The position numbers were made by a program, and so were the translations under genes. DNA of 64,000 nt from Lytechinus pictus (lineage: Eukaryota): positions 9,982,001-10,046,000 of the forward strand of contig NC_087261.1 in the NCBI RefSeq assembly GCF_037042905.1, read 5' to 3'. The notes beneath the pieces are model-generated. The model made no database searches. It saw only the letters and a program-made list of their open reading frames with translations, and was not told where the DNA came from. How positions within the stretch are numbered: position 1 is the stretch's first letter; each line of letters starts with the position of its first letter. Shown here in pieces: positions 16,362-48,650 of this stretch.

Positions 16362-16389
16362 TTAACTTTTTAGTCTTTCCGCATTCCAG

Positions 16390-21096: not shown

Positions 21097-22285
21097 TCAA
21101 GGGGAATCTGGCGGGAGAGATGGGGGACGCGGATGATGGAATTCCGCCGAGATGCGCGTCACCGCAGACACTGAATTCCCGCGTCCGACATTAACATAAT
21201 CGTGTTTAGTTGGTGTCGCAGAAGGGCTACCCATAACACCTATCCCGCCATTTGGTGATTTCATGTCTGCAAGTGATGCATACTGCGGCGACTCAGGTCC
21301 AGACAGTCCCGTATGGTCGGACCCGCCGTTAGTTTTTAATGTTAACGGGGATGGTCGATTCCGTTCCTTAGCACTTTCATGAGGCGAATCCCCTTCACCT
21401 GCAATACCGTTCGCTTTTAAAATTTCAGGTGGTGCTGGTTTGGGTTCACCTAAACTGTCGTATGGCGACTCATCCAGGTAACCACCGTTCACAGCTGCTG
21501 CTTCGGTTTCGCCTTTCACGTGTGAATCACTCTCATTATCAGACTTGGGGGACTCTGGATTCGAATTGTCCTCACCATTTCGAACATTGGCATCCGTCTC
21601 TGAGGTTTCAACTTCTCCATTTTTCTCTGTATCATGATCAAAGCCATTCTCTTTTGGCGTTTCAGGTTTTGGGGACGGTGGACGCGCAGTGTGAACGACC
21701 ACATGCTCTGTTGTCGGCGAGTTCTTCGACGGCAACGAAGGTGACGATCTTGCCGAAGATTCTTCATTATCGTACCCGTGGTTGACCCGACCATCGAATT
21801 CCACCATGAGCGCGTCTAGCATCTCACTGCTTCTACTTGATCTTAATTCACCCTTGAAGACCTCATCGAGGCCGTTGTCCACAGATGATACGATTGAAAC
21901 CGTCGAGAATCTTTTCATCGGTGCTGGGTTTGGCAGGGTACTTTCGACCTCGCTATCCGTTCGGGCGCCTTTCGGACTAACGTATCCAACTTCGGCATGA
22001 CTCGTAACCGATCGGGAGCTCGATTTCTTCGGATTCTTTTTCGGTGGCAGTTCGGGCCTGTTTCGGTTCAGTGTGACACGCTTGACGAATTGTTGCTTCA
22101 TGGTACTCAGTGAGTGTGTCAGTGTGCCACCTTTTTTAATATTGTCTGTTTCTCCTTCCGGGTTGTCTGTGAGATCCTTTTCCGGGTCACGATTACGTCT
22201 GAGGGTACCGCCGAGTGTTCCTTTTTTCTTGATGTACCCCAGCACAACTTGAGGGACGTGTTTGTTTTGCTCCTCTTTCCGTTTC
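21097..22285 (-). CDS. WSC-CCP receptor exon 6, long cytoplasmic tail
   Basis: ttttttatgacag| acceptor in phase 2; starts RKRKEE (stop-transfer); S/P/E-rich open frame to the stop at 21097. The six exons total 2403 nt (800 aa). Confidence 0.88.
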
Positions 22286-22880
22286 CTGTCATAAAAAAAG
22301 AAAGAAATATATTGAATTTTGTCATTTATGAATATATACATTTTTTACGAGCCGATTGAAATATTATCATGACCATGAAAACAAGTTTGGACAAACGTTG
22401 ATAATTAGTTTTTGTAATCATCGAATTCAAATTTAATTTGGAACAACATTAAATCGATAAAAAAATAATTAAGATACAAAACCAGACACGGTCTTTCTGC
22501 TAATACGGATTTTTCGCTCCGCAACCTAAGGAGGACTCAAGAACATACAAAATGTATTGTCAAATGCCCTTCATGACAAAAATCAACCAAGAATTCTTTG
22601 TAGAGTTATGGTGAATCAAAACAGCGGTTTCGTCATCGACTCTGGACAACGAGATGCATGCTTGCAATTTTTCGTCAGCTGCGAAACCTAAGACCAAACT
22701 ACTCTTCCGGTTCAACAATTTCGACAAAAACCTCCTAGCTGCTCCTTGTCATTTGATGGGCATTTTCAGTACATTGACTGTATTCTTGAACCGTCCGTAC
22801 ATTGCGGAGCAAAACCTCCATAATGACAGTGGATGCATCCGATTAAAACGTACAGGTGCGAGGAATTTCAGTACCTTCTT

Positions 22881-24736
22881 CATAGGCGGATCCGGAGCAA
22901 AAAAGGGAAAAAGAGGAAAGAAACAAAAAGAAGAAAAAAGGGGGAAAAGAGGAGAAAAAAGAAAAGGAGGAAGACGAGTGAATAAAATAAGATTAGGGGA
23001 AGACTTGGAAATAAGAAGAAAATTTCATGTCACTATATTAAACTTTCGCTCGCGCTTCGCGCTCGCATTGCCTGTTAGGTGATTTTCATATCTTGTTCAA
23101 TATGGAGTTTAAATATCAAGTTTGGAAGTCAATATACAAAACATATTTCAACTCGGAAATCGAACTTTCATTATTTTGTGTGATTTACAAATTGATTTTT
23201 AAAAAGTGCTCTGTAAAAATTTCAGTTTTATAGTCTGAATATAAACATTTTCTGCTCGCGCTGCGCGCTCGCAAATTTTGATTTATCAGGTACCTATTAT
23301 TTTCGTGTATTCCATAAAGTTTTCAAAATATCCCTTTTCAGGTCTGACTGTCAAAACAAATGCTAACGCTGCACGCTCGCATTTTGATTGGCGAGTTATG
23401 TATGTCTCAATATTGATTATACAACAAACTACTTAAAATCCCCTTTTCATGACATCAGTTTATCAAAAATTTTGGCTCGCAATTTGCGCTCGTATTAGTG
23501 GTTGAAAATATATTAACTGATGCATCCTATTTATGATTACAAAAAGTGCTTGAAATGTCCAGTTTTCAGGCTATATTATCATCAGATTTCGCGCCCTCAT
23601 TAGGCATTAATGAAATAAGATGTTAATTTAATAATTAAAATTGTTATGAAACACGTGCGCCCATGTTTATTCAGATACTCAACTTGTTCTCTATTTAAAC
23701 CATCCAGTTTCAGATCACAATATAAAAAATTTCTGCTTGCGCTTTGTGCTCGCATTATTGATGTAATTGGAAGATCCCCAATTACTCATCCTTTTTATGA
23801 TTTACAAAACATGAATAGAGTGTCTCGTTCACTAGGTCTAAGTCTCGAAATTTCTGCTCGCGCTTTGCGCTCGCATCGATTGTTTAGTTAGGCCTATATA
23901 GCTACCCTTTTCACTATTGCAAAAAATGATTAAAATTTTCCATTCTTTATGTAGAAATGTCAAAAATTTTCAGCTCGCGCTTCGCGCTCGCATTATTTGA
24001 TTGTGGAAATACTTATGTAACCTCTTCATGGCTAAGTGCAAGCAGTCTTTAACAGGTATCTTTTCGATCAGTTCAAAACGTATATAAAAAATTTCTGCTC
24101 CAGCTTTGCGCTCGCATTATCAATGTAAGGAAGATCCCCAATCACTCATCCTTTTCATGATTTACAAAACATGAATAGTGTTTCGTTCAGTAGGTCTAAA
24201 TCTCGAAATTTTCCGCTCACGCTTCGCGCCAATTGTTTGGTTATATACCTATTCTGTTTAACTTACAAAAAGTGCATAGAATTTCCATTCTTTGGGTAAA
24301 AATGTCAAAAAATTTCAGCTCGCGCTTCGGCGCTTCGCGCTCGCATTATTTGATTTATAAATATATTCATGGCTAACTGCATGCAGTCTTTAACAGGTAT
24401 CTTTTCCATCAGTTCATTTCTGCTCGCGCTTCGCGTTCGTAGTAATTATTTAGTTGAATACAGATCTTTTTAAGGATAACAAACATTGCCCAGAACGTTC
24501 AAATTTTAGGAATAAATACATAAGATTTCCAAAAAAATTTTTAACTCGCGCTCGCATGATATAAATAAGGATTATGATATATTTATATTGATTTATAAGA
24601 ATAAAGCTAAGAAGTGACTATTAGGACTACCCCTTCAAAGAAACCAAAACATCATCTTCGAGCAGCCGATCGGGGAAAATATGGCTGAAAAAAAATTCCG
24701 GGCCCCCCCTATTGGCGAAGGCTGGATCCGCCCCTG
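22881..24736. mobile_element. 1.86-kb non-autonomous TIR element with internal tandem array
   Basis: CATAGGCGGATCC...GGATCCGCCCCTG termini; flanks CCTTCTT/CCTTCTA; internal GCTCGCGCTTCGCGCTCGCATT units. Confidence 0.8.
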
Positions 24737-25100
24737 CCTTCTACCATTAATTGTCAGTGAAAATTGCTGACGTATCTCTTCGTGAAGTGCTTCCCATTAG
24801 AGTGTCCCATGGAGCATATCCACATGACAACAGTTATAAGCCTCAGTCATACTGAATTAGCGTTTCTGGTGCACTCTAAAAACACTGAGTAAAATGTTAC
24901 CCAATATTGGGTAAAATGGGAACATGCATGTTTGCTGGGTATTTTTATACCCCATATTGGGCAAAATGCAATTTGAAGGGTAAATTTCAACGCAACATTG
25001 CGTAAAATTTCTTTACCCAACCAACATGCATGTTCCCATTTTACCCAATATTGGGTAAACCTTTTTTTTATAGTTTGAAAACTAACCACACATTCCTTAC

Positions 25101-25176
25101 CTGTAACAACAAATGGCCATGATGACGATTAGGATGACGATGAGAGGCACCACCACGGCTACGGCGATCACCCAAC
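25101..25176 (-). CDS. WSC-CCP receptor exon 5, transmembrane helix
   Basis: gacag| acceptor; GWVIAVAVVVPLIVILIVIMAICCYR; AG|gtaagg donor; phase 1-2, which matches the last exon. Confidence 0.9.
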
Positions 25177-25388
25177 CTGTCGATGACGAAAGATAAACAA
25201 AAATAAGATGCAAACAATTATAACGCTTTGAAGGAATACTCCGCTCCGATTTACCCAGAATAGAAATTGATGTCAAATATTTCAGCGACGATTTCGATCA
25301 GAATTTCGGTCGTGATTTTCCTCAAGGTGTTAAATCTTGCAGGGGGGAAATGATTCATGATTTTCTTCCGTTTTGCTTGGGAATTATT

Positions 25389-26054
25389 CCCGGGGGGGCC
25401 ACTTCCATTGACGAGTGGATACCATGCGCGACCACGGGGTCTTGAAAAGCACCCTAAACACGTATTTTCCATATTCTGAAAATGCACCCCTTAACAAGTA
25501 TTGGCGTGTGAAACCCTACCCTTAACAAGTATTGGAAACAAATACTATTGGCAAGTATTCCCAGAACTGAGCCCCTAAACAAGTACAGCGATGTATTTTC
25601 CATATTCTGAAAATGCACCCCTTAACAAGTATTGGAAACAAAACGATACTCTTAGCAAGTATTCCCTGAAATGAACCCCTAAACAAGTACAGAGATATTT
25701 TATTGTTATGTCACGCGTCCCACGGTCGTCGGTTTTACCTTTAGACACCATTTGGTTTAGTACGGCCCCACCTTCCACACCTCGCGCAAATCGGACTCTA
25801 AACACGTAGTGTTGGGGCAAAAAGGACATCCTTTATAAAACATTTTGATTTTGTTTTATCATCCCCGCATATTTGACCCAAAACACGTATATTTTTCCGA
25901 GTGAAATAGATACCCTTTTTTAAATATTTTTGTGTTTTTGACACCCTTATCACGTTACGTACGTAACGTGCCCTATCTTGAAAAAGACATCCTTTTTACG
26001 TGTTTTTTTGGTCGCGCATGGTATCCACTCGTCAATGTAAGTGGCCCCCCCGGG
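25389..26054. mobile_element. MITE with about 45-bp TIRs and 8-bp TSD
   Basis: CCCGGGGGGGCCACTTCCATTGACGAGTGGATACCATGCGCGACCA and its inverse; TSD GAATTATT; internal duplication. Confidence 0.9.
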
Positions 26055-29000
26055 GAATTATTTTGACAAGCAAATAAGACGGATAACCCTCGTGGTATCA
26101 CTCCAAAATTGGTCACGTCACACCCCCCCCCCACGAAAATACACCCAAGAAAAAAAATGGCTTGTCATACACTTTTATAACTTGGTTATATTATGAACAT
26201 AGTTTTTATAAACAGAAGGGTTTAACAAACTGCATGTAGAACGAATAGGGTGTTTTTAAAACCAACATTCGGGTGTTGGTTATAAAAATATTCCGCAGTC
26301 GTCTATATAAAATAACGCGTAATTTAATGACCCCCCCCCCACCCGAGAGCCTCTGTCGTCACTGAGTGGGATTATGGGAAGGTCCCAGGAATAGACTTCC
26401 GTGTTGATTTCCTGTCCTCATGGTCACTGCTAAAACCCGCTTCGTTTCTCATGCTCCTTATTTCCTTTTTCAGTTTACAAACAATCCAAAACACCGGATG
26501 CAATAGACAGCTAATCATTACCTCGATGACATGTAAATTAAAAATGACGAACCCATAGAACGGATATTTCTTTGTTAATTTCAAACTGCTTAATTTGTCT
26601 ATTCCAATAAAAAAATGGAAGCCAGGCCTAATGTATATTAATGAACTTGCTTGCCTAATTGCTTTAAAGCGATTAGGAGTATTCCATAATAACCACCTAA
26701 TTATTGTACATGATTATTAGAGCATAAATGAAAATAAAATCTCATCGATGATGTGAAATGCAGTGGCAAATAAAACTATAAACTTGTATTCCATAACTGT
26801 AATTTGTATTACAGGTGGGTGTTTCACAAAGCTGTTCGTAATTTACGAGCGACTTTAAGAACGACTGGTGATCCTTTCTTGTGGTAAATGGGTATATTCA
26901 TTGGCGATGGATTGGCACGTAAGAAAGGTTCACCAGTCGTTCTTAAAATCGCTCTTAACTTACGAACAGCTTTATGAACCGGCCCCCTGAACTATTATTT
27001 CTTCAATGATTGAGATAGGTCTAATATAGATTCTTCATAAAGCCTTATAAAGGTCAATGAAAAGCAGGATCGAAATAAAAAAAAATGTCCGACGACTTTT
27101 TTAAATATATATTTTTGTTTGCGGTATTGATAATCCGAATTGATGATTAAGATATTCAATTGGAATATCAAAATTCATCGAAAACTGTATTGAACGTTTA
27201 CGTAAAGGAAATGAGGTCGTATGTAAGATTATGCAGTCCTTGAATGTTGAAAATGGAAATGAATATAGTGTTTAATGCCTCTGATTATTTGGAATTTGAC
27301 TAATTTACTATTTTTCGAAAATATTTTTGCAATCGCCTTTCGATTTACCCCCCCCTAAAAAAAAGGGGGGGGGGGATTTGAAGAAAAATTACGTTGGGCG
27401 ATGGCTCCTTGCAAACGTAGAGAAATCTTAACCATGTTATGCATTGGGTACACTTTATATTAGTGAATTTAAGATAAATCCACATCGATTTTAAACAGTG
27501 ACTAGTCGAAGTCTGGAGTCATATTTTATTCTTAAACGCTTGCATTTAATTCAGTTACGATTTACAAGTGTAAAATCTGAATGATCTCAATCTTAACCCA
27601 GAGTTTAATATCCGCAGTATCATATTTAGATTTAATTTGAATCGGTGTAATCATTGTTGAGTGTGGAAATTAACTGTCTGACTATGAGAGTGATTGTTTC
27701 GTTTAAAAATTGCTCCATTCATCGAAAATCCAATCCACACAAAAAGTCATGTAAAGACGAGTTCTTTCATTTTCATTTATCAATTCCTCTGTACTTTGTG
27801 AAATACTTTGATGAAAGCATTTCCAGCTTATTTTCATAAGTTCAAGGTCATGGACTTTCAAAGAAACCAAACGTGTAATATTCACACGACCTCAAAGTAA
27901 TTTTCGGGCAATGGTGACTTCCTAAACAACTACCTCGAAAACCACAGAGAGTCTTTTCACTTGTTTCTTGTCGGTGAATAGTCAGAAATATATATCATTG
28001 TTGAAATACAACATCGTTTATTTTCATCATCATTATCATTCTTTTTCCCCGAAAATGAAAATGTGTGGTTTGGAATCTCGCATGAATTTTCGGAGCTTCA
28101 TCTATTGTTAAAATACCATGTAGTAAAAATAAAGATAATGATCATCTACATAAATCATAAAGTGGCTAATAAACAATAGGGTAGGGAAATAACGCACGAA
28201 GGTACTAGAGGTGGCAACAATTAATTATGAGAGAACTTATTGGAAAAAATACGTGACATCATGGTAATTCTTTTAAAAGTTCATTTAAAGGAGGTTTGCT
28301 TCGTTTGTCTTCTAAACAATTATATATATATATATATTGTTATTCCGTGTATTACCATATGATTTCTCTTAATTTGCTATTATTTACATTATGTTTGTTC
28401 TGTTGCTTATTCTATGATTTGCTTTATTTGTTTTGTTTAGCAAATAAAAACTGAAGAAGGCCAGGGCCGAAAGCTTTACAACATAGTGTATACTTTGCTT
28501 CATCCTTGATTCTACTCTACTCTTCACACATATATTATAAACAATGATCAAAGCGATTGGTACATATATCAACGCCTCTCTCGTTATATATATATATATA
28601 TATATATAAATGTTCATTGCATTAATTTTGCATCACATTTCCCTCTTAAGAATTGCTCCTACCCTTTGGCTAAATAAAAACCCTATAAATACATTCCCTC
28701 CTCGACTATGTAGACATCCCCTCCTCACCCACACGCTGGTATCTTTCAACGCAGGCCTTAAAACGATGAAATTATATTTTCACCAGTAGAGCTAGAAATA
28801 CGTATATGAGTTAACCCACTCTCTACCGAGATCGTGTGGCCCCTGTAAAACCTATATATGAATTTCAGGATTCAACTAAAAAACGGTCAACAAGGTATCC
28901 TAAGGTATCCTTAGGAATAGGGAAGGTTTAGAACTGTTATTGTGTAATTGTGTCTAATTATTATTTTGTTAACCACACGCTTTTGTGTAGTATTTATCTT

Positions 29001-29633
29001 TGTTTTTAATTAATAATATTTATCATTATTGTATCATTCATTATATATATATGTCATATTATTTCTCATGTTACTTTGACTGGACCTCTAGGAAGATCAG
29101 AGCCATTATATCAATGGCTCTGAATAGATTGATCCATCCGTATATTTTCATGTTTATATATTCATATTTAATCTTATATCTTGTGCAATGTATGTTATTG
29201 TGATTTTTATACGGTAAATAAAACCAAACCAAACGAAACAATATCTCCCCAACGGACAATTAGGTCAACTCTCCTTTTCTATGCACGTTTCCCCCGTTGA
29301 AACCCCTAAGGTTAATTATTCTTTATCAAACGGAAAAAGGGAACTTATTACATCATTGGTTGCCTCACTGAATGATTTACACATAATGGTGGATTGAACC
29401 GTTTTGTGAAATTACATGAAACTTTACCGTATTTTCCACAACAGGAACTCGATGCTATTAGAACAAAAATCACATTTCAAATAAAGATTGCCAGGAAATG
29501 TTAGACTCACATAAAGCAGTTCATAATCCAGTCATCTATTTATGCATAACAGTACAAGCAAATTTATGAAACAAATCAGTAACCAAACATTGCATGTTTT
29601 CAGTCAAGTAGAATAAGCATCAAATTAACATAC

Positions 29634-29774
29634 CTTGGTTCGACTCACTCGTTGGGCCAACTCCTGTCGTGGATCCAGTGGGTTCAAGACTTGTCATATC
29701 AATGACGACCGCTGATGACGTTGGTTGGTCGTTGCTAGGTGTGGTCGCGGGAGACGCCACCGTTGTCATAACAT
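29634..29774 (-). CDS. WSC-CCP receptor exon 4, Ser/Thr/Pro-rich stalk
   Basis: tttttag| acceptor, G|gtatgt donor, 141 nt, phase 1-1; DVMTTVASPATTPSNDQPTSSAVVIDMTSLEPTGSTTGVGPTSESNQ. Confidence 0.85.
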
Positions 29775-31198
29775 CTAAAAAAACAATTTGGAATGTAATC
29801 CATGTTCAAACTTTGAAATCCGTTAATCATTCCGATAGAAAAAAAAATATAGTAGGCAATCCACATGTTAATAGAATTCTCTGCCTATATGATGAGGGCA
29901 TGAAACAAAGATGTCCGCTCTTGAAGAGACGAGGAGGGGTGCATGTTGAAAGGGGAAGGATGGTAAAGGGGTACTGGTGGGCAGGGGTGGGAGGAGGGTG
30001 TAACCTGAGCCTGAAGAGTTAGAGCAAATTGTACAAAATTATGTAGACAAGCTCGTAGAGATATGCAAATATCACCTACAAGACAGCATCGAGAGTACAA
30101 AAAGTGTATAAAGACCAGAAAAGGTGATGGAAAGTGTCCCTTAGGTGTGGGCGTGCGTGCGGAGAGAGAATGACAAGGGGGGAGGGGGAGGGGACAGGTG
30201 AAGGGGCTCCCCGTCCCCGATAATCCTTTTGACCCTAACCCCATGCTGCAACGATGAATAAGCTTACCACAAAACACCTGCACCTTGGAAAAAATCGGTC
30301 ACAGCTTCTCCAAACTTGGTCACCACTGATCTACAAAAACCGCGTATTAATCCATGCGTGCAGGTAACAATTTCTGACGAAATTGTTTGACCCACCACAT
30401 AATAACACAAAATGGCACAGAGCAAAGGTTCCAACAACTCTCTGGTTCCAACGACCAGCAGTACTTCAACTAGTGTGTAGAGTAATAATGGTATGAAAAA
30501 AGGTAATCGCAGTTCCTCTCAACATCCTGTAGTAGAGAGAAATGTGGCTGGTTGCATGAGGAAGGCGTAGCTAGGTCAACACACAATTTGGGAGCACTGT
30601 ACAAACATGATTTCCGAAGATAATATATACATTCAGGGGCCTGTTGCATAAAACCTATGCCATAAACAAAAACTCTGGCAAACAATATTATGCCTTTGAC
30701 GATAACACATTGAAAAACATTGAATAAACATTGCCTTAGTTTATTTTTTTTCTGTGCAACAGGCCCACGGTGGTAACAATACACCTTTGAGCTCGAACAT
30801 AGCACCAATTATGGTGTTACAATGGCATACAGAATGTGCTATAATAATTTCAATGTGTGTTCAACTAACACAGTGGATTCAACAGAGGTGTTAAGTTTTT
30901 GCTGTGGTTCTAACTGATGCAGGCCACTATTATAGCAGTATACATTTAAACTAAAGTCTAAGTCTACACCAACACTTAATCTCACTATGAAATAAAGAAA
31001 GATAAAACAAGCATATGACACTGAAAATTCAGCGAAGTTAGATAAACATGGTAAAGAATAACTTGCTAAAGATTTTTTTTCTCTATCTCATGAAATAATC
31101 ATTCGCAGAATGTGTAAGCGGGAGTCAGTGATAAAATCAGAAACGACAAACATTCATAATAAAATGTGATAATGAAGCTCTCTATACTAGTAAATTAA

Positions 31199-31779
31199 AG
31201 GGGAATCCAACCCAGATAAAAACTTGTTTTTAAAGGAAAAAGAAAATCAGACAAGTTGGTAGGTGAAAGTTGGGAAAATATCGGACAAACAATAAGAAAG
31301 TTAACAACTTTTAAAAGTTGTAAATATTGGTAATCATAATACCCATTGGCCGCATACGTGATGTCATAGTGATGTAAGGCAAGGACTACTCTTTCATGTA
31401 CTCCAATGCATAAAATTGCTAAATTGTCATTTTGTTAAAGAGTTTTTCTTCAAATTATATTTTTCTTTCATGAGGACATAAAACAATATACTCTTATAGA
31501 TTACTGCCTCAGGAAAATGGATACTTACTATAGGAGAATACCACATATCCCTAATAATTAAGTACATGGCCTATGGAAAGTTGTCCTTGCCCCTTGTCAT
31601 AATTTACTTACCCAGTTGCCAATTTGAAATCTAAATAGTCTTTGGAATTTTAATTTTAAAGCAGCCATAACTTTCTTATTGATTGTCCAATTTCTTTAAA
31701 ACTTTCACCATTCTGTTTTATTCATTTTCTCCTTTCTAACGGCCAACTCAACATTTTATGACCAAGGCTGGATTCCCCT
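31199..31779. mobile_element. TTAA-targeting MITE, copy 2
   Basis: Same TIRs and TTAA TSD; colinear with copy 1 but diverged. Confidence 0.88.
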
Positions 31780-32626
31780 TTAATCACAAAAAGTTGCAAT
31801 AATCATTTTACATGCTTCATGGCCAGCCGGATTCCATTCAAAGAACAAAAAAATATTAATCGGGAGGAGAAAGATCCAATTTAGATTACTTAAATACAAT
31901 AAGAAAACTGGGTGCGCGGTGTACTTTGCACCTTAAACCACGCAAAACTAACATTTCATAACTCAAATACTCTACATCCGATTTTAGAGAATTGTCAATG
32001 TTTACAAACTGTTGTTTAACTATTATTGTAATACAAATCGATGTTCACCTTCAGAATTTCATCCGAAATCTTGTGGGTCATGCTCGTCCCAAGATCCCAA
32101 GATTATATTTTATATACCCCCCAAAAAATAATAAAAGATAAAAATAAAACCCCTAATCAGGATAGAATGAAATGATTCCAGAAGTAAATATAGTAATTCG
32201 ATTTTCTGACTTATCTCAATACGAAACTTTTGTGTTGAGGGGTTATCAGTCCTTTTCATTAGAAAATATCACATAAACTCAAAATGTCATATAAACGCCA
32301 TTGTCTCATTATTACGTAATTCAATGCGTCATCCCGTATAATTTTGAAGAAAAGTGGATCCAGCCAAATTCCCTCGTTTATAAAGACTAAAAACTGGACT
32401 TATAAAATGTAAAATAATTTGAGAACACAGTGGAGATTCTGTGTTAGTATTTCCATGGTTTCAGGAGTTTTCTTGATAAAAATTATGAAAATGAAGAGGC
32501 GGCTACTGTCTACTGAATAGATTCAGTAGACAGTTATAGTGCTATGCTCTCCCATCAACTGACACGACTCCAAACCAACAGATGCTATGTCATTGACAAA
32601 AATGTAATAGTTTTTTTGTCGGCCAT

Positions 32627-32904
32627 GGCCCCGTCTTACAACAGTACAAAGAGTTACGATTGATCCGATCAACCTCAAGTATATGGAAATCCATCAATGT
32701 CATTTTACTTTCTATAGGAAATTTTCACAATGTCCTTTGGAAACAAAGAGAAGCACGCTGAGTTTTAAAGAAAACTATGAATGTATGACTACACATCATT
32801 ATCTAGAAAATATTTTACACAAACGTGTTTTTAGATGTTGACGTTGTTGGCTTTCCATAGTTGTGGTTGACTGGATCAATCGTAACTCTTTGCAAGGCGG
32901 GACC
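32627..32904. mobile_element. GGCCCCGTCTT-ended MITE (PIF/Harbinger-like ends)
   Basis: About 40-bp TIRs; second copy at 40400-40671; similar short elements near 26812-26989 and 30634-30766. Confidence 0.75.
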
Positions 32905-34861
32905 ATGAAGTCGGTTTCGTGAGTGTGGCTGTAGCATAAGTGATATACGTGGGATGAACGAATTTATAGGCCCTATTCTCGATAGGAAATTCATCAATAA
33001 TATTAACACTGTTACGGATATTTCTTATAGCTTCTCTGGTGATAAAGGAAGGCAATTGTTCCTGGCATGGCTGATAACATTCTGGGGTCACGCTACCATT
33101 GTAAACACAGACAACAGGAAGCTATTAATTTTCTTTTTGCATGTTTTGTGGCAGTGAGACTTTTCTTCCTCATTCCGTTCCCCCTATATTGCTTGTATTT
33201 CACTTTACCTTGTAATTNNNNNNNNNNNNNNNNNNNNNNNNNNNNNNNNNNNNNNNNNNNNNNNNNNNNNNNNNNNNNNNNNNNNNNNNNNNNNNNNNNN
33301 NNNNNNNNNNNNNNNNNNNNNNNNNNNNNNNNNNNNNNNNNNNNNNNGGTTATTTGCTATTTGGAGACCATAGTCAGTGATGGTAAACGTTTCAAAATTG
33401 CACCTTTCTGTCATTCTGTCATGTTCTTTGGTCCTAGGTTCAATCCCCCTTCTCTCTCCCACTATGAAAGGGAGGGGGTGCATATTCCCTGTACCCCCTT
33501 AGCGGCAATCTCCTCCCTCAAACAGGATACCGACTCACAGACAGGAGTGAGATTTGACATTTCCACTACATGGATTGCAAACGAGGCAAACGTCATTCAA
33601 AGTTGAATGACCTTCCGTTTCTCCACTTCCCTTGATGTCGCAGTCATATCGAAGAATCAGGTTAAAAATCTTCTTTTTTTCGAAGATTTTGTTAATCCAA
33701 AAATGAAATAAGGTTCAATATTCTGATGGTTAGTTGATCCGAAAACTAAATAAGATACTGTCCTATAAACGTTCGTCCGAAAACGAAAAGAGGTTTGTCC
33801 GAAAACGAAGCAAGAATCGCCAGAACAAGAAATGAGGGTCGTCCGAAAACGAAATAAGGTTCGTTATTTCGAAGGTTGGATGCATGGCCCTCGGAAGCAG
33901 GGAACGGTGCTGAAGCACCCCCAAGACTTAGCTGGGGTGCTGCTTGTACCATAGGCAGTACCCCTGGAAATCTGGTAGGTATACATGTATGGTAAATAGG
34001 AGAAATGTTATCAAAATCAGCTTCAATCTTGCAAGTCAAATTTTTCCTGGAACAACAACTTTATTTTGTATCCAAAACCATTTGTTCTTATGCTGGTCAA
34101 CTTAAACCAGCAACCTCCTGTTAAAGAAATTGTTCCCAGGGCCCTGCTTGTTTGCTTTGGATTCCATTCCGTTTGGTGTGACTGTGTTACTCTCTGACGT
34201 TATATGAATTTATGAACATAAAAACACACGAATGTACCCACCAAGAGCAAAGAGGAAACCAAGCAGACAAAGGAAATACACTTATGACTCAATTCAGAAG
34301 ATGCCCCAATGGGAATAAAATGGCATCGCAAATTATTCAGCAACAAAAGGGACCCCCTCCCCCCTTGAACCGAACCTGCAGTTGGTCTTTTCCCAACACT
34401 AAGAGCCGTGGTGACGGGATCAACGTTTGGGAGAAGAAGTAATCAGCATGATCAGTGTCGTTGCTGGAAGATCATATTGAGGGAGAATAGAACAAAGGAA
34501 ATCTAAAGGGAGAAGGAATGGGGGGGGGGGGGGTACTCATGGAGGCAGGGTAAAATAGTAGATCATGGACAAGGCCCTCTCTGGCGGGGGGGGGGGGTAT
34601 ATTACATTTAAGACGCATGCGTCAATAGCTGAGTTCTCCCATGCATGCCCTAGACCTTAGCGGATATAGGCCTATAATATTTTCAATTGGAAAAAGACAT
34701 CCGCTGAGAACCATGGTAAATGTAAACACGGCGGTAATGGCGTCACGAATAGATAGTCCATTCAAAATGGGATAAACTATATGGCGAAGATAACTCAAAT
34801 ATCAGATTAGTCAAAAGGCCTACATGTTTATCTAGCAAAGAAAATTCCTCAATTTACTTAC

Positions 34862-35401
34862 CTGGGCAAGTAAAACCTGATGTATTCCAGTATCCCAAAC
34901 TTCCACATCGGAACGTAAAACTTAAAGACACTCCATCACACACGAAATCTACGAGCGCCCCCATGGCAAAGTAGTCTAAATGTGAGGTGGTTGCTAGGGC
35001 GCCCCCAGGAGGCAAGTTCGTCTTTGCACACACCACTGGACAGTCCGTGGGTAACCACAAACCTGTGCTGTCACACTCGGTGTTATATAGATTTGTTGCA
35101 TTTCCCAAGCATGTGTACGACAACGTTTCGCCGATGACAAAGCTCTCGTTCGCCACAGACTCAAAGACCACGTACGGCAGCGGATCGGGTGGGGAGCAGC
35201 GGATTGTACAGACCGGCGGAGCACCGGACCAGTTGTTTTCTGTGCAGGTGATAGTGGATGTACCCGTTAAGGTACTAGGTGATACACAGATGGTGCTGTA
35301 GTCAAGGGTGTCGTTGATGGTGAAGTTCCTTTGGTTGACGGGTGGGTAGATGTCTTCACCGACATTGAGGTAACCCGGATGGAAGCAGTCCGATGCAGGA
35401 T
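34862..35401 (-). CDS. WSC-CCP receptor exon 3, three CCP/sushi-like domains
   Basis: 540 nt, phase 1-1, G|gtaagt donor. Three C...C...C..W..C units: CFHP...TITCTENNWSGAPPVC, CSPP...YTC...CDSTGLWLPTDC, CAKT...FVC...CGSLGYWNTSGFTC. Confidence 0.88.
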
Positions 35402-35653
35402 CTGTTGTTGGTAGATTAAAAATAGTCTTTTTTAATATTGCCCCATTTTTCTAGTTTAAGCCACCCCCTACCAAACCTGTATGTAATTTGCTCAACAATA
35501 ATCGACTTTTTGATTCACCTGAGGGAACAGAACTTTGAGAAGACCTGCCCAGTTGTACTGCATATCTTGACTTATACAGTTGACAACAGTTGTTAAGTTT
35601 ACAACATTTAAAAGATCTTAAGTCTTCAAATTTTGTTCGCCGATTATCCATAC

Positions 35654-36007
35654 CTTTTATTTCATAGACGAAAACATGAAAGCTTTCACCGCACATCTGT
35701 GTCTGGTCACCGGTACAGTTCTTGCTGCAAGCTGAGTCGGCCGGTGGCGCGCCTTTCGAATCATATGGCGCGAAAGCTCCTCCGCATAGGCACTGGCTGC
35801 CATCTTGGAGCCCAAAGTAACGTGCATTTTGGTTGGTGCATATTTGAAAACAGAGCTCAGGTGTCATGTCATTTGATTGGCAGTAAGGCTGTTTAGGAGT
35901 GCATGTGTTAATGCAAGATTGGTGAAGGGCGCCCTCGCACTGGATGAGATCTGGAAGAACATCGTATTCGAAGTTGTCGTAGAAGCAGCCTATACTGACG
36001 AACGAAG
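35654..36007 (-). CDS. WSC-CCP receptor exon 2, WSC carbohydrate-binding domain
   Basis: T-tract atag| acceptor; SIGCFYD...MTPELCFQIC...YFGLQDGSQCLCG...CSKNCTGDQTQMCGE...VYEI matches the WSC pattern; G|gtatgg donor; 354 nt, phase 1-1. Confidence 0.92.
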
Positions 36008-38583: not shown

Positions 38584-39052
38584 ATATGTGACCTGCCACC
38601 CCAAAACCAACAATAAGTCGACAAAAATGAATATTGAGATTTTTATTGAGCTGAAATATGTATTTCATAAGCTTTGAAATGATGTATAATATGTTAAAAT
38701 TGACCAACAATAACCATTACAAGTACTTGATTGAATGCAGAGGAAATTCAGCAAGAGTTTAAAAAATAAGGAGAAAACAAGGTTTGAAGTTAGGGGTTCA
38801 CTCAAGCATGAATGTGCATACTGTGCAATCTTAGTGAAACTTCCAAGCAGTCCGAAAAAGTAGTGTCCAAGAAACTCGTGTATCTTTTCTTTTATTAAAC
38901 TAATTCAACTTCACGACTTCAAATTTTCACAGTATGAAGAAGAAGAGTTGCTCCTTTAGATAAGCAATTTTTTCTTATTTGTGGTTTTTGGAGACTAAAT
39001 TACTATTTTGGCTATTCACAGAGAACCTGCTTACCTGTGGTAGGTCACATAT
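38584..39052. mobile_element. MITE with ATATGTGACCT...AGGTCACATAT ends
   Basis: Terminal inverted repeats in a TA-rich site. Confidence 0.7.
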
Positions 39053-40744: not shown

Positions 40745-41110
40745 TTCTCATTTGGTCCAATGCCCGTTCGTCCAATCACCAACTCGTCTACTGTAACATG
40801 CATAATTTGATCTACCATCAGTTCGTCCAATATCCACATGGTCTAATCGTCATTTCGTCCACTCACCATTTCTTCTAATAACCAGTTGGTCCAATAGCCA
40901 TTCAGTCCATATACCATTTGGTCTAACTAGACTAAGTGTTAATTGGTCAAAATGAATGAAAATAAAACGAATATTAGACCAACAGGTTATGAGACGAAAT
41001 GGTCATAGACGAAGTGGTGATTAGACGAAATGATGATTGGACCAAATGGTTGTTTGACGAAATGTTGATGGACGGAATGGCATTAGACTATAGACCATGT
41101 AGTGAGTGGA
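40745..41110. repeat. Foldback-like repeat with TTCGTCCAA/TAGACGAAA units
   Basis: Short-unit repeats switch orientation near 40940. Confidence 0.6.
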
Positions 41111-42850
41111 CCCCTGATTCATTCCCACTCGAGCTTCAAGAATCCTGCCAATTGATTTTCACATCTAAACAATGATTCACGATAGCAATAATAATTTATC
41201 TCTTCTATATATCTGATATGTACACTATTACATTCCTTCATAACTCATATATTTACATAATTCTTATATTTCAATACATATAAGTTCTGCACGTTGTCAA
41301 TCATTGCATGGTTGAAGTAAGATTTGAAACAATTGTCTTGCTGAAATACAGTGTAAACAGCTAACTATAACAAATATTTATATCCGAAACTGCTAAAGCA
41401 TCATAGCTTAAACATGAGAGCGCAAAAGCATATATACCTTGTTTGCAAACAAACATCGAAATTAAATTGGCAAACATAATCATGATAATACACTCCCGTC
41501 TGGTTTGTTTTCCATAAGACTGGTGCATTTCATTTTCATTTCATTTCATTTCATTTATTGGTTTTTGCAACATTTTTCATAACAGAATTCTGGACAAGAA
41601 AAATACATATCTGAAACTTGACATCAAGATAATGAACAATAGTTTTGTATATAAATCCTCAAACATATCTTACATAAATGAAAATCATTAAGTGGTATTT
41701 TCTGTTACACAATAAATAGGATGGTTGCAAGGGTCGTCACAAAAGCAAAGCTTGAAAACGTAACAACCCTGGAATATAGCCAAAATAATTAATATCTATT
41801 GTCATTAAACGTGCAGGCGCATGAGGGACGGGGGGGGGGGAGATGTTTGGTCCTTAGCATGGAATTTTAGAAAATAACACGTTTTGTTGTTTGATTTTGA
41901 TTTATACATGTTCTAGATAAAAGTCAATGTCTAATTAAACATGAAAAGGAACATCTTAACACTGCAAAAATAACGGTGTTTTAACACCAAGGTTCTTGAG
42001 TCGAACACCGCCCAGCTTCCATGTACGACAACACCGGTGATGGAAGGTAATAACCGAACACTAATTCTTGGTATTAATTTGCCAATGCAGCTGAATAATG
42101 ACAATACGCGGTGTTGATTTGACATCACTGGTGTTAATTTCAATAGTATAACACGTTGGTCTGGTAATTGGGCCCAATCCTGCGGCGTCACTTTGGTAAA
42201 CATAATAATCGAATGTGTTTTTTTTTTTCAAGTAATTGAACGGAAGTTTTTGTTTTGTTCTTCTTGTTAAAATCAACAAGAATAGCGAAATATTATGACC
42301 AACCCCCTCAAAAAAGTGTTATATTGTAAGTGACACACTATTTTGGCATTTCTTTTTTTACACCCGATCATTAATTTTACAGTGTGCCTACACCTTCTTC
42401 TTCTTTGGGACTTTCATTAGAGAAAGAATTTAGATTTTTCTGGCAAGATAGATATGTAATTTTACAATAGCATTATTATCGTATTAGTATTTGCAATTGC
42501 GTGACTATAGTATTATGTGATATCAAATTTAACACATTTTAAATTTATTCATTCCTTTATTCATTCATTCATTCATTTATCTAGGCTTTTACTTATATTC
42601 ATATACAAGGTTGCACATATTGATTGTCTTCCATGTGACCCTCTTCGGGAAAGATCAAACAAATAGCAACAATAAACAATGTATAATAATAAAAAGATAA
42701 TGCACAACCTTCTTCTTCTTTTCTCTTCCTCCACTAAATACGAAGATCTACAGCTGGTTACTGCATGGGTTGATAATAATTAGTGTATTAGGTGCCTCAA
42801 ACACTTCCTCCCTCAGAGTTGAACAGATATTAATACAAAAGTCAAAAGGG

Positions 42851-42889
42851 GCCTAAGCTTTCGATCCTAGCAGAATCTTCGTCGGAGGC
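42851..42889 (-). ncRNA. Minimal hammerhead ribozyme motif with core variant (Penelope-type remnant)
   Basis: The minus strand reads GCCT-CCGACGA-A-GATTC-TGCTA-GGATC-GAAA-GC-TT-AGGC. Confidence 0.65.
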
Positions 42890-45800
42890 AAAATGATAAA
42901 CATATAAAGTGGAACAACCATAATAATACATTCAAGAAAGAGAAGACAGAATTATGTAATTGTATGATTATAAATACTTAGTATTCTTATTGATTAAGTA
43001 TACCTGTTCATTCAATAATTATACTTGACAATCTGACTTTGTGAAATAATATTTTTACATTTAGAATTAGTTTTGACAATGAACATGAGGAAAACGATCA
43101 ATGGAAGCTTATAACTAATTATGTTGAAAGTAAACCCACATAATCTACACAGTCTTACATTTCAAATAAATGTTTATTTGAATTGAATTGAAGTGAATTG
43201 AATTTCGGATCATAATCTACTTTACATCCGGGAACTCCTTGTCCTTGGGACGGGTATAGATTGAATCAATGATTATGCTTATTGTCATTCTATTCTTAAT
43301 AATGGGGAGTAAAGAAACTGGATCTTTTCATGAAAAGCTGTCCGATCCTCCCACATTGGTGATAAAATCCTTAAATATTTGTTTGCTTTGTACTCTTGCC
43401 GAATATCTTTCCTCTTACAAATGATTCTCTCAAAGAGGGGTTTCTGTTCTGAAAAGCCTTGGGTTGAGTTGGACGAAAAAAAAACAGCGCACATATAAAA
43501 CGATTTGCTTCAAATATCCTTCGCTGCAATCAGCATGATCTGATGATCAACGCAATGCATTTTCTATATGGTCGAGGAATGGTTGATACGTATCTATTGT
43601 AATCGTAAAAACTAATTGCAAAAAATGATAGTTTGATAGGCGGTACTAGAATTACATCCATTCCTTTACCACGTAGATATAAGCACATTTGAATGTTTAT
43701 TCATGGTAATAGTTGGAATTGAGACTTGAATATTAAATACGATGTGACTTAAAAGCACCAATTCCACTCTGTCGAGTGTTCAGGGCGCATAAAGAGCTAA
43801 GAATTAAATAAAAAGTATTTTAGAAGATTTTTAAAGACTCAACAGCGATATGACATCAGAAAAACTATTCCCCAATGTGGGGGCATGCGTGAGTAAATAA
43901 TCTCGTAAAAAAAGATTTTGGGTAATTTTTCGAATTACCAAAGATATTAAATGTATTGAATGCATTAATGTCATTTGATCTCGAACTGTTAAACCTAGCA
44001 CAGTACAAACGCTTTAATCTTTTTTTAACATTATGATGCATTATGAACTGATCAGATATTGTTTAAACTTTGAACAAAATGTTTGATTTTTTTAAACAAC
44101 AACGTTCAATTTCTAATAGGTCTATCTATTGCTTAAAAGTTGGCATCGCTGTTGACATTTTGTCAACAATACTCTCTTTAAGCTCTTAAAGAACAACTGT
44201 AAATTCATATAGTAAACTAAGTTGTATGAATTGTCATGTTGTTTAATTTTGATTTTACTGTGTAAAATAATGATCCCATGGAATAAACAGGACCATTTTT
44301 ATGAATATTATCGCGATTCCTTGCTACGTTGAATCCATAGTAGAATGACCCTCGTTATAATGCAATCAAGCAGGGATACATGACCCGTGAAATCAATTTT
44401 TATAATTTTCAAAGGGATTTTGGCAATGATAAAAATTCTTGTATATGGCTTCCAAAATTTGCTCCGAAAATGGAGGAATAAACATCAATGATTAATCACA
44501 ATTCTACAATATTCCAATCACTATATAATGATCATAAAATCAACTGGAAGGGCGTCAATGGCGACATTGCCGAATTCCCTTAAAAGTCACAGAGCTTCCA
44601 AAAATTATAACTTGAATTTTTATTGTCGAATGTCCCACACACCTTCAACACAATGTACCTTGTCGCTGTTTTTCTTCTGAAATTAACTTATAGTACACAA
44701 CGTGAAACCTCAGTCACACTGACAAGGTCCAGACTCCGAACCAATCAAAATTAAATATCTATGTTCAATGACATGCCATTGGTCCATTTGGAGTCGCTTT
44801 CGTTATTATACGAAGGGGTCAAGAACAGAATATATTATTGGAAATAACAGACAAATTACAAAGAAGAAATGTGGTGAAACAGAACAGCAGTAATTCCTAA
44901 GTTTCAGAGCTGACGAAATATGGAAAACATATCGTTTGTCCACAGTTTAAAATCTTAAACAACAAAGTGTAATTTGCAATATTTAACTCTAAATAAATAA
45001 AGCATAGTTGTTTAAGCTGTTAAACAGCTATAGTGTAAGGTTCGTTTAGTAGGCAGCGTTGTATAAAACTTTAATAAGCGTTTCTACTGTGCAGAATCAA
45101 GGACTAATTTGCTGTTTTTATTCACCAATTTTTGACAAAGACTTAAGTTCTCATTCATGTGGGGCATTTTGCGATGTATTTTCTCTGTTCGTGAATCGTC
45201 CGTACATCAATCACTCAGCAAAAACTCCCTATACTACCTACCCTCCTCTCATCTTCTTGAATCACCGTGTACTATATTACTATTCTTCTCGCTTCATTTC
45301 AGACTTCCTTTCATATTGTATGATTGATATGCGAGTTTGGTGGTGTGATTGTTCAATATTGAAGCGCATGAAAAACCCAGAACAATAAAGGAAATATGTC
45401 CTGGACAATAAAGTAATATATCCTCTGAACTTTGCCTTGATTGGAGCACCACAACGTGAAATATGAATGCGAATATTACCAATATTTTTTATTGGTTTTG
45501 GTGGACTTTAAGAAGGCTTGGCAGTGGATGAATATTAGATTTCATATTCTCATTTAATGGCCTTTTTTATGCGAAAATCTTATCGAGTTCTTTTTCATTA
45601 TTGCAGTCTGGAAAGTTCACAAGTTCATGATAAATTTCCAGATACTCTTTATATCGTCTTTCATGGAATGTAACAAGAAGTTGTTATTTTTCTTTCTCTT
45701 GATACGAGGGACTTATTTACATTGATTGTTAGTATTATTTGCGATAAATTTAGTAATAAATGAATCATGCAAGCATATATATACAGGTATATAACATGAA

Positions 45801-47630
45801 TAAAAAAATAATGACACGTACAAAGAAGGAGGAAAATTACCTGTTTCATATCGAGTTTGATATCGTTACTTTTCATATCTAGATAAGTTTGAATTTCTAC
45901 CTCTAATATTTCTATAAGGTATAGAGAGCATGCATCTTATGTATTGTTTCAATGCTTATTTTGTAATACAATTGATATGATTGACAATGATATACATGAT
46001 GTTAATAATATTTATTTTTTGTTTTTAATGCATTTCTGTCAATACATTTTTTTGTTTTTAATGCATTTCTGTCAATACATTTTTTTGTTTTGCATTTAAA
46101 ACACTTTTTTACATTGAACATATATAGCATCTACTGATTTAGAATCAAATTTAAACAAGCTTGTTTACGAGCAAAGAGAAGGTAAATAGAAAGTATTTTC
46201 AGATAAATTGTAGATTACCGGTAATTCATAAGATTTAATTATCGAGTGTAAACATGAATTATCTTTACTATTTATTTAAGAATCTGACATTTACGGATAT
46301 CATATCTTTAGGCCCAATGATCCACAAAGGATTACCAATTTCAACTGAATAAATCAGTTATATATCAGTTTCATTTACTGTAAGAACAAATGTTAACTAT
46401 TATATTTAGCCCCCACCCATCTATACGACAGTGAAGAAAAAACGTAATACAGAAAGATTTTTTAAACCAAAATCGAATGTTAAATAAGGAAGATTTGATA
46501 TTACAAACTTTCGCTTCATTAAAAAAAGAAAAAAGTTTTCAATACATGCTATGATAGAGCCTATGACGTCACACGCATTGTAAATTGCACGTGTGACTTT
46601 AGAATGTAAAAAAAGAAAAGTAAATTTACAAGTGTTTGAAAAGTATAATAAAATAGTAAATTCCACTGTCATATTTGTTTTGAAATTAATAAGTTTAAAA
46701 AATTAAATTACACACGCACATTGAAATGTATATCAAAAAAGTACAGTGACCTAAAATCAAACATTCATTGACGTTTTGAAGTTATACTCAAGTTTGCATC
46801 AATATCATAGGATATGACATCATCGGTTTATCATTTTATTATGTATTATAATATGTGAAGTAATGCAAAGTTTCAAAATGGCGTCCTTTTGTTACTGACA
46901 TGACATCCTAATGATTAATATTGCTGACTGTAAAGTTGGTTAGGTATTTGATACAGTGTGTGAGGATATGCCCGTTTGAGACTGCATACATGTCCTGCAT
47001 GAGGTTGTGCCGCGATCGAGTGGCTTAAAGCACGAAAGTCAGAGGATCCCCGCTCTTATTAGGGGCAGGGGGGGCACAAACATACTTTCATTTGGGTTGA
47101 AAGGGGTATGGTGTTATTGTTTTGTTTTGCTTCGGTTACTTTTTCTTTTTTCTTTTTCTTTTTTTTTGCTTCTTGGCTATTCTTCAGACTCCTTAATATT
47201 AACAACAAAGGGGCGGGAGGGGGGGGGGGGTGGTAGGTAGGTAGGGTCCAAGGCCGAACCTATGTTGTTATAGGATATGAAATATTTAAGAAATGGGGCC
47301 AAGGTGTTAGAGGTTTTCATTTAAAATTTTGTTAATGGCTTCAATTCGACTAGATTGTATTAATGATTTATTTTGTGTATTTAGAAAATCTCTTAAAGTG
47401 TTGTGAATATTTGACAATAGAAAAAAGATTTGAGTACGTTGAGTTTATTGGGTTTTATTGTAACACTAAAGGGAAAAAAGAGAAAATGTAAAGTGTTAAT
47501 TATTTGAGTTTTCAATGTATTCAATTGATTTGTAAAGATATTATATTTTCTTTGATGTATTTCATTTTGTATATGAATTGAAGTTTGTTGAGAAATAAAA
47601 AATGCCCTTGAACAAATACAATTTTATCTA

Positions 47631-47872
47631 CACTGCAAAAACTCCGGTGTTGATTTAACACCAGCCCGGAATCTATATATGTCCACCCCAGAGAAGTGTT
47701 AAACAACACCAGTTTCGTTTTGGTCTAACACCAGAAAGGTGTTTATACAACACCAATTAGTATTAAAACAGCATCGGTTTGATTCCAAACTGGTGTTGTT
47801 TCAATACTTCTCTGGTGTGGACATATATAGATTCCGGGCTGGTGTTAAATCAACACCGGAGTTTTTGCAGTG
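47631..47872. mobile_element. Palindromic CACT...AGTG MITE with TA TSD
   Basis: About 55-bp perfect arms. Relatives with CACT ends occur at 11682-11893, 12183-12262, 24872-25074 and 41960-42384. Confidence 0.88.
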
Positions 47873-47929
47873 TATACAATTCTCTTTCATCGTGTATATA
47901 TGTATATATATATATATCAAAATGTTAAT

Positions 47930-48190
47930 CACTCTCGCCTTTCAAACAGAGGGTCGTGGGTTCGAATCCTAGCCATGGCGTGTTTTCCTTCAGCAAGAAA
48001 TGTATCCGCACTGTGCTGCACTCGACCCAGGTGAGGTAAATGGGTACCGGCAGGAAGTAATTCCTCAAAAAGCTGTGCGCACCGGAACGGTAGACTAGCT
48101 TAGTCGGGGTAATATAGGAGCGCCTTGAGCACCTAGCAAGGTGGATACGTGCGCTATACAAATCCTATATATTATCATTATTATTAATAT
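47930..48190 (+). mobile_element. tRNA-derived SINE, 5'-truncated
   Basis: B-box GGTTCGAATCC, central CTCGACCCAGGTG...AATGGGTACC, LINE-like tail GCGCCTTGAGCAC...GCGCTATACAAAT, then (ATT)n. Confidence 0.8.
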
Positions 48191-48547
48191 TATAGTACAT
48201 GTATTACCAAATCACACACGTGCTTATAATATTAATAACAAAAATGCTGTATAATATTTCATACAACGATGGTTACCACAATATTATTATGAACTTTACA
48301 GTGGTTGTTCAACAATTTAAACAATCACGCTATTTTATTGAAGATTAAATATTAAAAATTTTTGTTTATGCTTTTAAACACGTGTTTAAATCTCTGTAGA
48401 GTTCATACAGTGAACAGTAAGTATAAAATATTAAACAGCGCTTTTGCTGTGCTGTTCGTAGAAAAAAAAAATGTGCTTAATAGAGTTTATGTGTGGAATG
48501 TGTGTAGGTGTGTGGGGAGGGGGAGGGAGTGGGGGACGGGTACTTAC

Positions 48548-48650
48548 TAGAATTCAATTGTGACGTAACAAGGACCGGTGTCACCATCAGAATAGTAAAT
48601 GTCATCAGTCGTGTCAGCAGGAAGGAGTGTATGATATTGGCTCGATCCAT
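48548..48650 (-). CDS. WSC-CCP receptor, coding exon 1 (signal peptide)
   Basis: MDRANIIHSFLLTRLMTFTILMVTPVLVTS-QLNS then A|gtaagt, a phase-1 donor compatible with the acceptor at 36007. This implies a 12.5-kb intron, in which extra exons cannot be excluded. Confidence 0.65.

Follow-up and report, generated by a model that had tools for sequence, protein, structure and literature searches.

WSC domains have been well studied in fungi; in animals they are known chiefly from Kremen and polycystin-1. The family is marked by eight conserved cysteines, which form four disulfides in the yeast sensor Wsc1, and by a conserved CGG motif in loop L5, while no glycan pocket was seen in Wsc1 (PMC9024836). 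In Kremen1, a co-receptor for Dickkopf, the WSC domain belongs to a rigid ectodomain of three domains, Kringle-WSC-CUB (PMC5014086). Here, we describe a gene from a 64,000-nucleotide stretch of the genome of the sea urchin Lytechinus pictus (NCBI RefSeq assembly GCF_037042905.1, contig NC_087261.1, positions 9,982,001 to 10,046,000; hereafter the window, in whose numbering positions are given unless stated otherwise). The region is one gene, LOC129280341, for an 800-residue type-I membrane glycoprotein in which a WSC head is followed by three CCP (complement control protein, or Sushi) modules, a short stalk, a transmembrane helix and a long cytoplasmic tail. The gene is real and well supported, and its product is a variant of the known mosaic type-I receptors. 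Four RefSeq annotations predict the gene, but it has never been studied, and in the literature searched we found no papers naming the identifiers of the gene or its orthologues, or the combination of WSC and Sushi domains in sea urchins.

A comparison with selectins (CD62E/L/P), which are known only from vertebrates, shows a common type-I layout with a recognition head carried on a CCP stalk, distal to the CCP row and the transmembrane helix. The selectin head, however, consists of a C-type lectin and an EGF domain and selectin tails are short, whereas the head of LOC129280341 is a WSC domain, leaving the CCP fold alone in common; Pfam detects neither Lectin_C nor EGF in the protein, which places it outside the selectins. 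Yeast Wsc1, also called Slg1 (PDB 7PZ2; PMC9024836), has the same series of signal peptide, WSC domain, Ser/Thr-rich stalk, transmembrane helix and tail, and its eight cysteines are kept. Compared to fungal Wsc sensors, LOC129280341 has three CCPs inserted, a stalk of 47 residues and an unrelated tail, and it belongs to an animal, which has no cell wall. We therefore rejected membership in the fungal Wsc-type sensors, given the intervening CCPs, the length of the Ser/Thr stretch and a tail with homologues only in echinoids in the searches made. Kremen1 and Kremen2 (PDB 5FWS; PMC5014086) are animal type-I proteins with a WSC domain and provide the top match to that of LOC129280341 in both sequence and fold, but their WSC domain is packed between Kringle and CUB in a Dickkopf co-receptor. 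Neither Kringle nor CUB has a Pfam match in the LOC129280341 protein, of which only the WSC domain aligns to Kremen, and it is not a Kremen. On the cytoplasmic side, motif patterns allow a functional analogy with LAT and PAG/Cbp, which also combine a juxtamembrane cysteine pair, a long disordered tail, several tyrosine motifs including pY-x-N (pY, phosphotyrosine) and proline-rich sites, although these proteins have almost no ectodomain and no sequence homology to the LOC129280341 tail. Similarity to complement receptors and regulators (CR1, CD46, CD55, factor H) is of the generic CCP kind, at ~20% identity.

Rebuilding the gene from the raw sequence, by stop-free stretches and splice-site inspection, returned six coding exons on the minus strand, exactly as a first-pass annotation of this DNA, which rightly pointed to an echinoderm, had proposed for an 800-residue type-I membrane protein (Table 1). 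All introns are GT..AG, with phases 1,1,1,1,2 and a pyrimidine tract at each acceptor, and the coding sequence of 2403 nucleotides (nt) yields 800 residues plus a stop codon. This translation is identical over 800/800 residues to RefSeq XP_063967897.1 ('uncharacterized protein LOC129280341', Lytechinus pictus). An older L. pictus model (XP_054772348.1, 775 residues) was set aside, since its differing N-terminus maps nowhere in the window.

Table 1 Positions of LOC129280341 exons, domains and tail motifs in the window
Feature	Position	Strand	Remarks
Exon 1, coding part	48548..48650	minus	ATG 48650-48648; signal peptide (residues 1-30); phase 1 end; N-terminus homologous to L. variegatus and S. 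purpuratus RefSeq models
Exon 2, WSC domain with 12 Cys	35654..36007	minus	Phase 1-1; Pfam PF01822, AF2, Foldseek; exon 2-exon 3 joint in RNA
Exon 3, CCP1-CCP3	34862..35401	minus	Phase 1-1; Pfam Sushi, hhalign, Foldseek; both flanking joints in RNA
CCP1 (exon 3)	35387-35208	minus	
CCP2 (exon 3)	35198-35040	minus	
CCP3 (exon 3)	35030-34866	minus	
Assembly gap (N)	33218..33347		Inside intron 3 (34861-29775); skipped by RNA joint in X1, X15, X19, X20
Exon 4, Ser/Thr/Pro-rich stalk, 47 residues	29634..29774	minus	Phase 1-1; acceptor used in RNA
Exon 5, transmembrane helix, residues 380-403	25101..25176	minus	Phase 1-2; kept in orthologues
Exon 6, 396 residues of cytoplasmic tail and stop codon (21099-21097)	21097..22285	minus	No known domain; single-copy
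Juxtamembrane island, residues 416-435 (PQVVLGYIKKKGTLGGTLRR)	22195..22254	minus	Near-invariant from Lytechinus to Diadema
Basic proline-rich island, residues 471-493 (FVKRVTLNRNRPELPPKKNPKKS)	22021..22089	minus	Overlapping pattern matches to SH3 class I (RNRPELP) and class II (PELPPK)
Acidic amphipathic island, residues 556-574, with LDALMVEF	21778..21834	minus	Near-invariant out to Diadema
Tail island, residues 579-591 (EESSARSSPSLPS)			Conserved
YDSL (Y680), in SPYDSL; island 680-687 YDSLGEPK	21451..21462	minus	ITIM-like S-x-Y-x-x-L pattern; Tyr in all four species
YASL (Y740), island GPESPQYA(S/T)L; residues 736-743 ESPQYASL	21271..21282	minus	Conserved
YVNV (Y768), in invariant YVNVGRGN; residues 767-774 DYVNVGRG	21187..21198	minus	pY-x-N pattern
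Proline-rich C-terminus, residues 789-800 (HPRPPSLPPDSP)	21100..21135	minus	Conserved out to Diadema
AF2, AlphaFold2; ITIM, immunoreceptor tyrosine-based inhibitory motif.

RNA evidence over positions 29705-35704 was drawn from two contig sets (X1, X15) and two raw stranded RNA-seq runs (X19, X20), and confirms transcription from the minus strand as well as the predicted splicing. The joint of exons 3 and 4 (29774->34862), which skips 5087 nt including the assembly gap and reads CT..AC on the plus strand, that is GT..AG on the minus strand, is supported by one X1 contig (depth 48.9), by X15 (depth 45.9), by 10 reads from 8 starts in X19 and by a single read in X20. The joint of exons 2 and 3 (35401->35654), which removes the 252-nt intron 2, was found in X1, X15 and X19. 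Exon bins contained only read pairs with the first mate on the plus strand, which, for a standard stranded library, fits a minus-strand mRNA. Little or no RNA depth was seen in X1, X19 and X20 over the non-repeat bins of intron 3, those adjoining the gap included; in X15, part of this intron was thinly covered (depth 2-6), as would be expected if that run included some unspliced RNA or DNA. Since the joints skip the gap and the flanking bins are nearly empty, the mRNA seen takes up no sequence from the gap or next to it, and a single transcript spans its two sides. An X1 contig of 3254 nt contains part of exon 4, the whole of exon 3 and part of exon 2, and continues for 495 nt in the 3' and 2149 nt in the 5' direction. 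RNA-seq mapping, put forward in the first-pass annotation as the check on whether the exons are of one transcript, thus joins exon 2 to exon 3 and exon 3 to exon 4, with no sign of separate transcripts. The remaining junctions (exons 1-2, 4-5 and 5-6) are predicted from canonical splice sites, colinearity with three orthologous RefSeq models and the geometry of the 3254-nt contig. Two further segments of intron 3 (31105-31904 and 32505-32904) showed RNA-contig depths of thousands to tens of thousands, with reads from both strands; these are high-copy dispersed repeats, unrelated to the mRNA of the gene.

Exon 2 was confirmed as a WSC domain, with the PAN/apple-like fold found in Kremen1 and Wsc1. 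The Pfam WSC profile (PF01822, cut-off 27.8 bits) scores 49.6 bits on the exon and 43 bits on the whole protein, and the closest solved relative by sequence is the Kremen1 WSC domain (31 bits). AlphaFold2 (AF2) modelling of the exon with a 66-row alignment gave a predicted local distance difference test score (pLDDT) of 89 and a predicted template modelling score (pTM) of 0.84. In Foldseek, the model matched Kremen1 (5fws; query-normalised TM-score, TMq, 0.67; root-mean-square deviation, rmsd, 2.8 A), the yeast Wsc1 sensor domain (7pz2; target-normalised TM-score, TMt, 0.78; rmsd 3.1 A; E ~1e-6) and also the WSC domain of a Fusarium glyoxal oxidase, with canonical PAN/apple domains at E ~1 or worse. 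All eight cysteines that define the WSC domain are kept in the 66-sequence alignment, C7 being near-invariant and C52, C56, C72, C74, C93, C97 and C105 invariant (exon numbering). The other four of the 12 cysteines in the exon are placed in an insertion behind strand 1, a peculiarity of the echinoid subfamily of LOC129280341, and probably form two extra disulfides. In the CGG motif of loop L5, C105-G106 is invariant, and the next residue is Glu (CGE) in both Lytechinus species and Gly (CGG) in Strongylocentrotus purpuratus and Diadema. The first-pass annotation cast the WSC domain as the lectin of the receptor, an assumption that now appears weak because its two closest solved relatives come without shown glycan binding: Kremen1 WSC sits in the ectodomain of a protein co-receptor for Dickkopf (PMC5014086), and a glycan pocket was not seen in Wsc1 (PMC9024836).

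Exon 3 contains three modules with four cysteines each (158/191/205/217, 221/250/262/273 and 277/307/318/331), in every one of which a tryptophan precedes the fourth cysteine. The Pfam Sushi profile (PF00084, threshold 20.7 bits) scores 36 bits in 2 stretches on the whole exon; taken module by module, the L. pictus scores are 18.9 bits for CCP1, 21.0 bits for CCP2 and none for CCP3, the last of which reaches 17.3 bits in the Diadema and 13.7 bits in the S. purpuratus orthologue. A CCP3 profile aligned to a CCP profile by hhalign with a probability of 94.5% (E 7.6e-8), with all cysteines and the tryptophan in register, and all three CCPs are real, the third being divergent. The modelled CCP region, taken from an AF2 model of the whole ectodomain of the L. 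variegatus orthologue (10-row alignment), matched beta2-GPI, CD46 and factor H in Foldseek over 170-197 columns at ~20% identity, while the ESM Atlas held no usable match for the ectodomain. The N-terminus of the protein is hydrophobic, and all eight N-x-S/T sites fall in the ectodomain. The transmembrane helix (24 residues) has a Cys-Cys pair at its end, which may be palmitoylated, and is followed by the basic stop-transfer run RKRKEE. The domains and their order (WSC, three CCPs, stalk, transmembrane helix, long tail) are therefore those of the first-pass annotation, but its 'mucin stalk' amounts to a short stretch of O-glycosylation type, the 47 residues of exon 4, with 49% S/T/P.

The cytoplasmic tail is a 397-residue, low-complexity sequence that is under constraint. 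It has no match in Pfam, its best ESM Atlas score (0.81) is under the usable level, and it has one match alone in the L. pictus genome, i.e. it is single-copy. A tail-only search of 5.8 billion proteins and a full-length search, both word-based and limited to 8000 candidates, found echinoid proteins alone, the tail having the orthologues of L. variegatus, S. purpuratus and Diadema as its only homologues; it does not follow from this result that sea stars, sea cucumbers or hemichordates lack it. Identity of the tail is 92% with L. variegatus, 78% with S. purpuratus and 51% with Diadema, about equal to that of the WSC and CCP modules (93-94%, 72-83% and 45-63%, respectively). Some ten short islands account for most of the conservation, with variable linkers rich in indels between them, a pattern expected of linear docking motifs. 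Motifs were assigned by pattern matching, which gave three conserved YxxPhi tyrosine motifs (YDSL, YASL and YVNV), one of them pY-x-N, and 14 S/T-P sites. The pY-x-N sequence is the consensus of Grb2-type SH2 domains, and LDALMVEF in the acidic island, a candidate LD motif, matches the paxillin-type pattern. A reading of YDSL and YASL as an immunoreceptor tyrosine-based activation motif was rejected, because the two stand 60 residues apart.

LOC129280341 is a 1:1 orthologue across Lytechinus, Strongylocentrotus and Diadema. The orthologues in L. variegatus (LOC121430676, XP_041483951.1; 799 residues, 92% identity), S. purpuratus (LOC100891112, XP_030838674.1; 806 residues, 76% identity) and Diadema antillarum (XP_071496841.1; 896 residues, 51% identity) have the end-to-end architecture and the tail motif islands in common with the L. 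pictus protein, although the Diadema protein differs in ~100 more tail residues in the variable linkers, with an extra YASI motif among them. In a tree of the WSC exon, the four orthologues group together (82/99), as do the three camarodont species of Lytechinus and Strongylocentrotus (95/93), apart from the paralogues and in the order of the species tree, in what is a short tree with moderate support. All of the orthologues are named 'uncharacterized protein', in keeping with the first-pass remark that no named protein with this layout was recognised, and LOC129280341 is not orthologous to any characterised family. The gene had been split in an older NCBI annotation of S. purpuratus, where its ectodomain half was auto-named 'complement receptor type 1'. 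In Diadema antillarum, two near-identical 896-residue copies of the orthologue (P0014, P0154) were observed on different contigs and may be haplotigs or a recent duplicate. The suggestion of a pattern-recognition receptor found no support here. Sea urchins have immune families that diversify, and a single-copy 1:1 orthologue with ectodomain and tail evenly conserved out to Diadema does not resemble them, which argues against a diversifying immune receptor.

Beyond its orthologues, LOC129280341 belongs to a larger set of WSC-headed receptors that has expanded in sea urchins, of which it forms a conserved, single-copy branch. When the WSC exon was used in an exhaustive HMMER search, 2446 proteins were returned, among which the whole 12-Cys exon is common to echinoid proteins only. 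Paralogues include S. purpuratus LOC755338 ('protein SLG1 isoform X2') and the L. pictus 'serine-rich adhesin for platelets-like' proteins (XP_063967929/32), and four paralogue loci lie on the L. pictus chromosome of LOC129280341 (at 6.414, 6.457, 6.471 and 27.276 Mb of that chromosome). These paralogues resemble LOC129280341 in a 12-Cys WSC exon (48-55% identity), one CCP1-CCP2 exon, a Ser/Thr stalk, a transmembrane helix and a tail, but they are without the third CCP, their mucin-like stalk is far longer, and their tail is short and unrelated, with NPAF and other tyrosine motifs. Genomic matches to the WSC exon concentrate on the same chromosome (28/32). There, in chromosome coordinates, three Sushi exons and a TM-like (transmembrane-like) exon come after a WSC exon on the same strand at 29441500-29459500, one Sushi exon does so at 11078000-11086000, and tandem WSC-TM pairs occur at 14.28-14.29 Mb and 25.10-25.12 Mb. 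As such series of WSC, Sushi and transmembrane exons recur on the chromosome, LOC129280341 is not alone in the genome in having this layout. Among WSC proteins of other organisms outside the family, the ten next-best hits contain no Sushi domain, their WSC occurring with PAN, DUF1996 or Metallophos. Two other candidates were tried and set aside: an ENA sequence (P0025) with 61% identity to the WSC exon is a possible but unconfirmed non-echinoid orthologue, and a Logan sequence (P0055) is an unspliced paralogue-type exon.

On balance, we lean towards LOC129280341 being a ligand-binding surface receptor that would signal through SH2/SH3 docking, as its domains and tail motifs suggest. The rigid WSC-CCP ectodomain would bind an extracellular ligand, protein or glycan, and ligand binding or clustering would lead to phosphorylation of Y680, Y740 and Y768 in the tail. 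The phosphotyrosines, together with the conserved PxxP sites, could then recruit SH2/SH3 adaptors, for example of the Grb2/Drk type, such that the receptor would be fused to its own signalling scaffold, following the logic of a selectin-like ectodomain with a LAT/PAG-like tail. Several points weigh against this interpretation. The motif assignments are pattern matches on a 397-residue low-complexity sequence, and the three YxxPhi motifs would fit AP-2 endocytic signals equally well. Animal WSC domains are not proven lectins, and the Kremen1 ectodomain makes protein contacts. The AF2 model of the whole L. variegatus ectodomain had a pLDDT of 51 with the WSC part unfolded, and the relative arrangement of the domains is not given by the model. 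At the 5' end, RNA sequence beyond exon 2, in contigs of two studies, exceeds the 103-nt coding exon 1 by ~1.8 kb; a pyrimidine tract and an AG lie 2 nt upstream of the ATG (48650), and a long or multi-exon 5' untranslated region, with one or more non-coding upstream exons, is suggested.

The same tyrosine motifs could instead serve an endocytic or scavenger-type receptor, in which YDSL, YASL and YVNV would be AP-2 sorting signals for uptake and recycling and not sites of phosphotyrosine docking, a reading we consider fairly unlikely though worth weighing. All three conserved tyrosines are of the Y-x-x-hydrophobic type and the neighbouring gene encodes SRCR scavenger-type domains, but a 397-residue tail with ~ten islands, PxxP sites and an invariant YVNVGRGN goes far beyond the needs of sorting, and pattern matching found no dileucine or NPxY signal in it. 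It also seems unlikely that LOC129280341, as the conserved single-copy member of a sea-urchin-specific radiation, is an animal counterpart of the fungal Wsc sensors, with a WSC-CCP head for sensing a defined extracellular glycan or matrix component (a sulfated polysaccharide or microbial beta-glucan, for example) and a self-contained phosphotyrosine/SH3/LD-motif scaffold for signalling.

We regard as distinctly unlikely a Wsc1-like role in adhesion or mechanosensing, with the WSC domain placed in the matrix or glycocalyx, the CCPs and stalk acting as a spacer, and LDALMVEF and the PxxP sites leading to focal-adhesion-type proteins. The order of WSC domain, Ser/Thr stalk, transmembrane helix and tail is that of Wsc1, on whose sensor domain the WSC model superimposes (TMt as above), NCBI names a paralogue 'protein SLG1', and the LD-like island is near-invariant out to Diadema; against this, the 47-residue stalk is far under the length of fungal Ser/Thr-rich regions in an animal without a cell wall, outside the WSC domain the sequence does not resemble that of Wsc1, and the LD assignment is one pattern match. 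A complement receptor or regulator, whose CCPs, like those of CR1, CD46 and CD55, would bind C3 (here its sea-urchin homologue) with the WSC domain as an accessory, is very improbable: the best sequence and fold matches of the CCP exon are indeed factor H, CD46, CR1/CR2 and beta2-GPI, in line with the former auto-name in S. purpuratus, yet the per-module Sushi scores are weak and the resemblance fold-generic at ~20% identity, no feature specific to C3b binding was found, and the auto-name has gone from current RefSeq. The chance that the gene model is an artefact, with exons of more than one transcript or an exon hidden in the gap, is close to negligible, for although three junctions are not directly in reads and ~1.8 kb of 5' sequence in the RNA contigs is unexplained, exons 2, 3 and 4 stand together on the 3254-nt contig, which extends further in both directions, reads skip the gap with precision, and three orthologous proteins are colinear with the model over its full length.

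Sea urchins hold many WSC-headed single-pass receptors, uncharacterised so far, to which LOC129280341 offers the most tractable entry, being single-copy, expressed, present as 1:1 orthologues across euechinoids and equipped with few, sharply conserved and mutable tail motifs. As L. pictus is genetically tractable, knockout and tail-motif mutants could reveal the role of an animal WSC receptor. If the protein were an ordinary adhesion molecule, the value of this work would lie mainly in the correct annotation.

Elsewhere in the window, a separate SRCR receptor gene lies at 14780-18736 on the plus strand, opposite in strand and tail-to-tail with LOC129280341; it comprises three SRCR exons (Pfam scores of 75, 101 and 112 bits) and, after them, an exon that encodes a transmembrane helix and a 150-residue acidic tail. 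Upstream of LOC129280341, a Ty3/gypsy-type long terminal repeat (LTR) retroelement occupies ~51349-58290 on the plus strand. Its open reading frames are a gag-like frame of 594 residues (51776-53557) and an uninterrupted pol of 1313 residues (53365-57303), with protease, reverse transcriptase, RNase H and integrase detected by Pfam, and its flanks (51349-51525 and 58114-58290) are identical and LTR-like. Low-complexity, microsatellite-like tracts, which are His-, Ile- or Asp-rich when translated, lie at 3700-4800, 59500-60100 and 62200-62800, beside the other four assembly gaps of the window.

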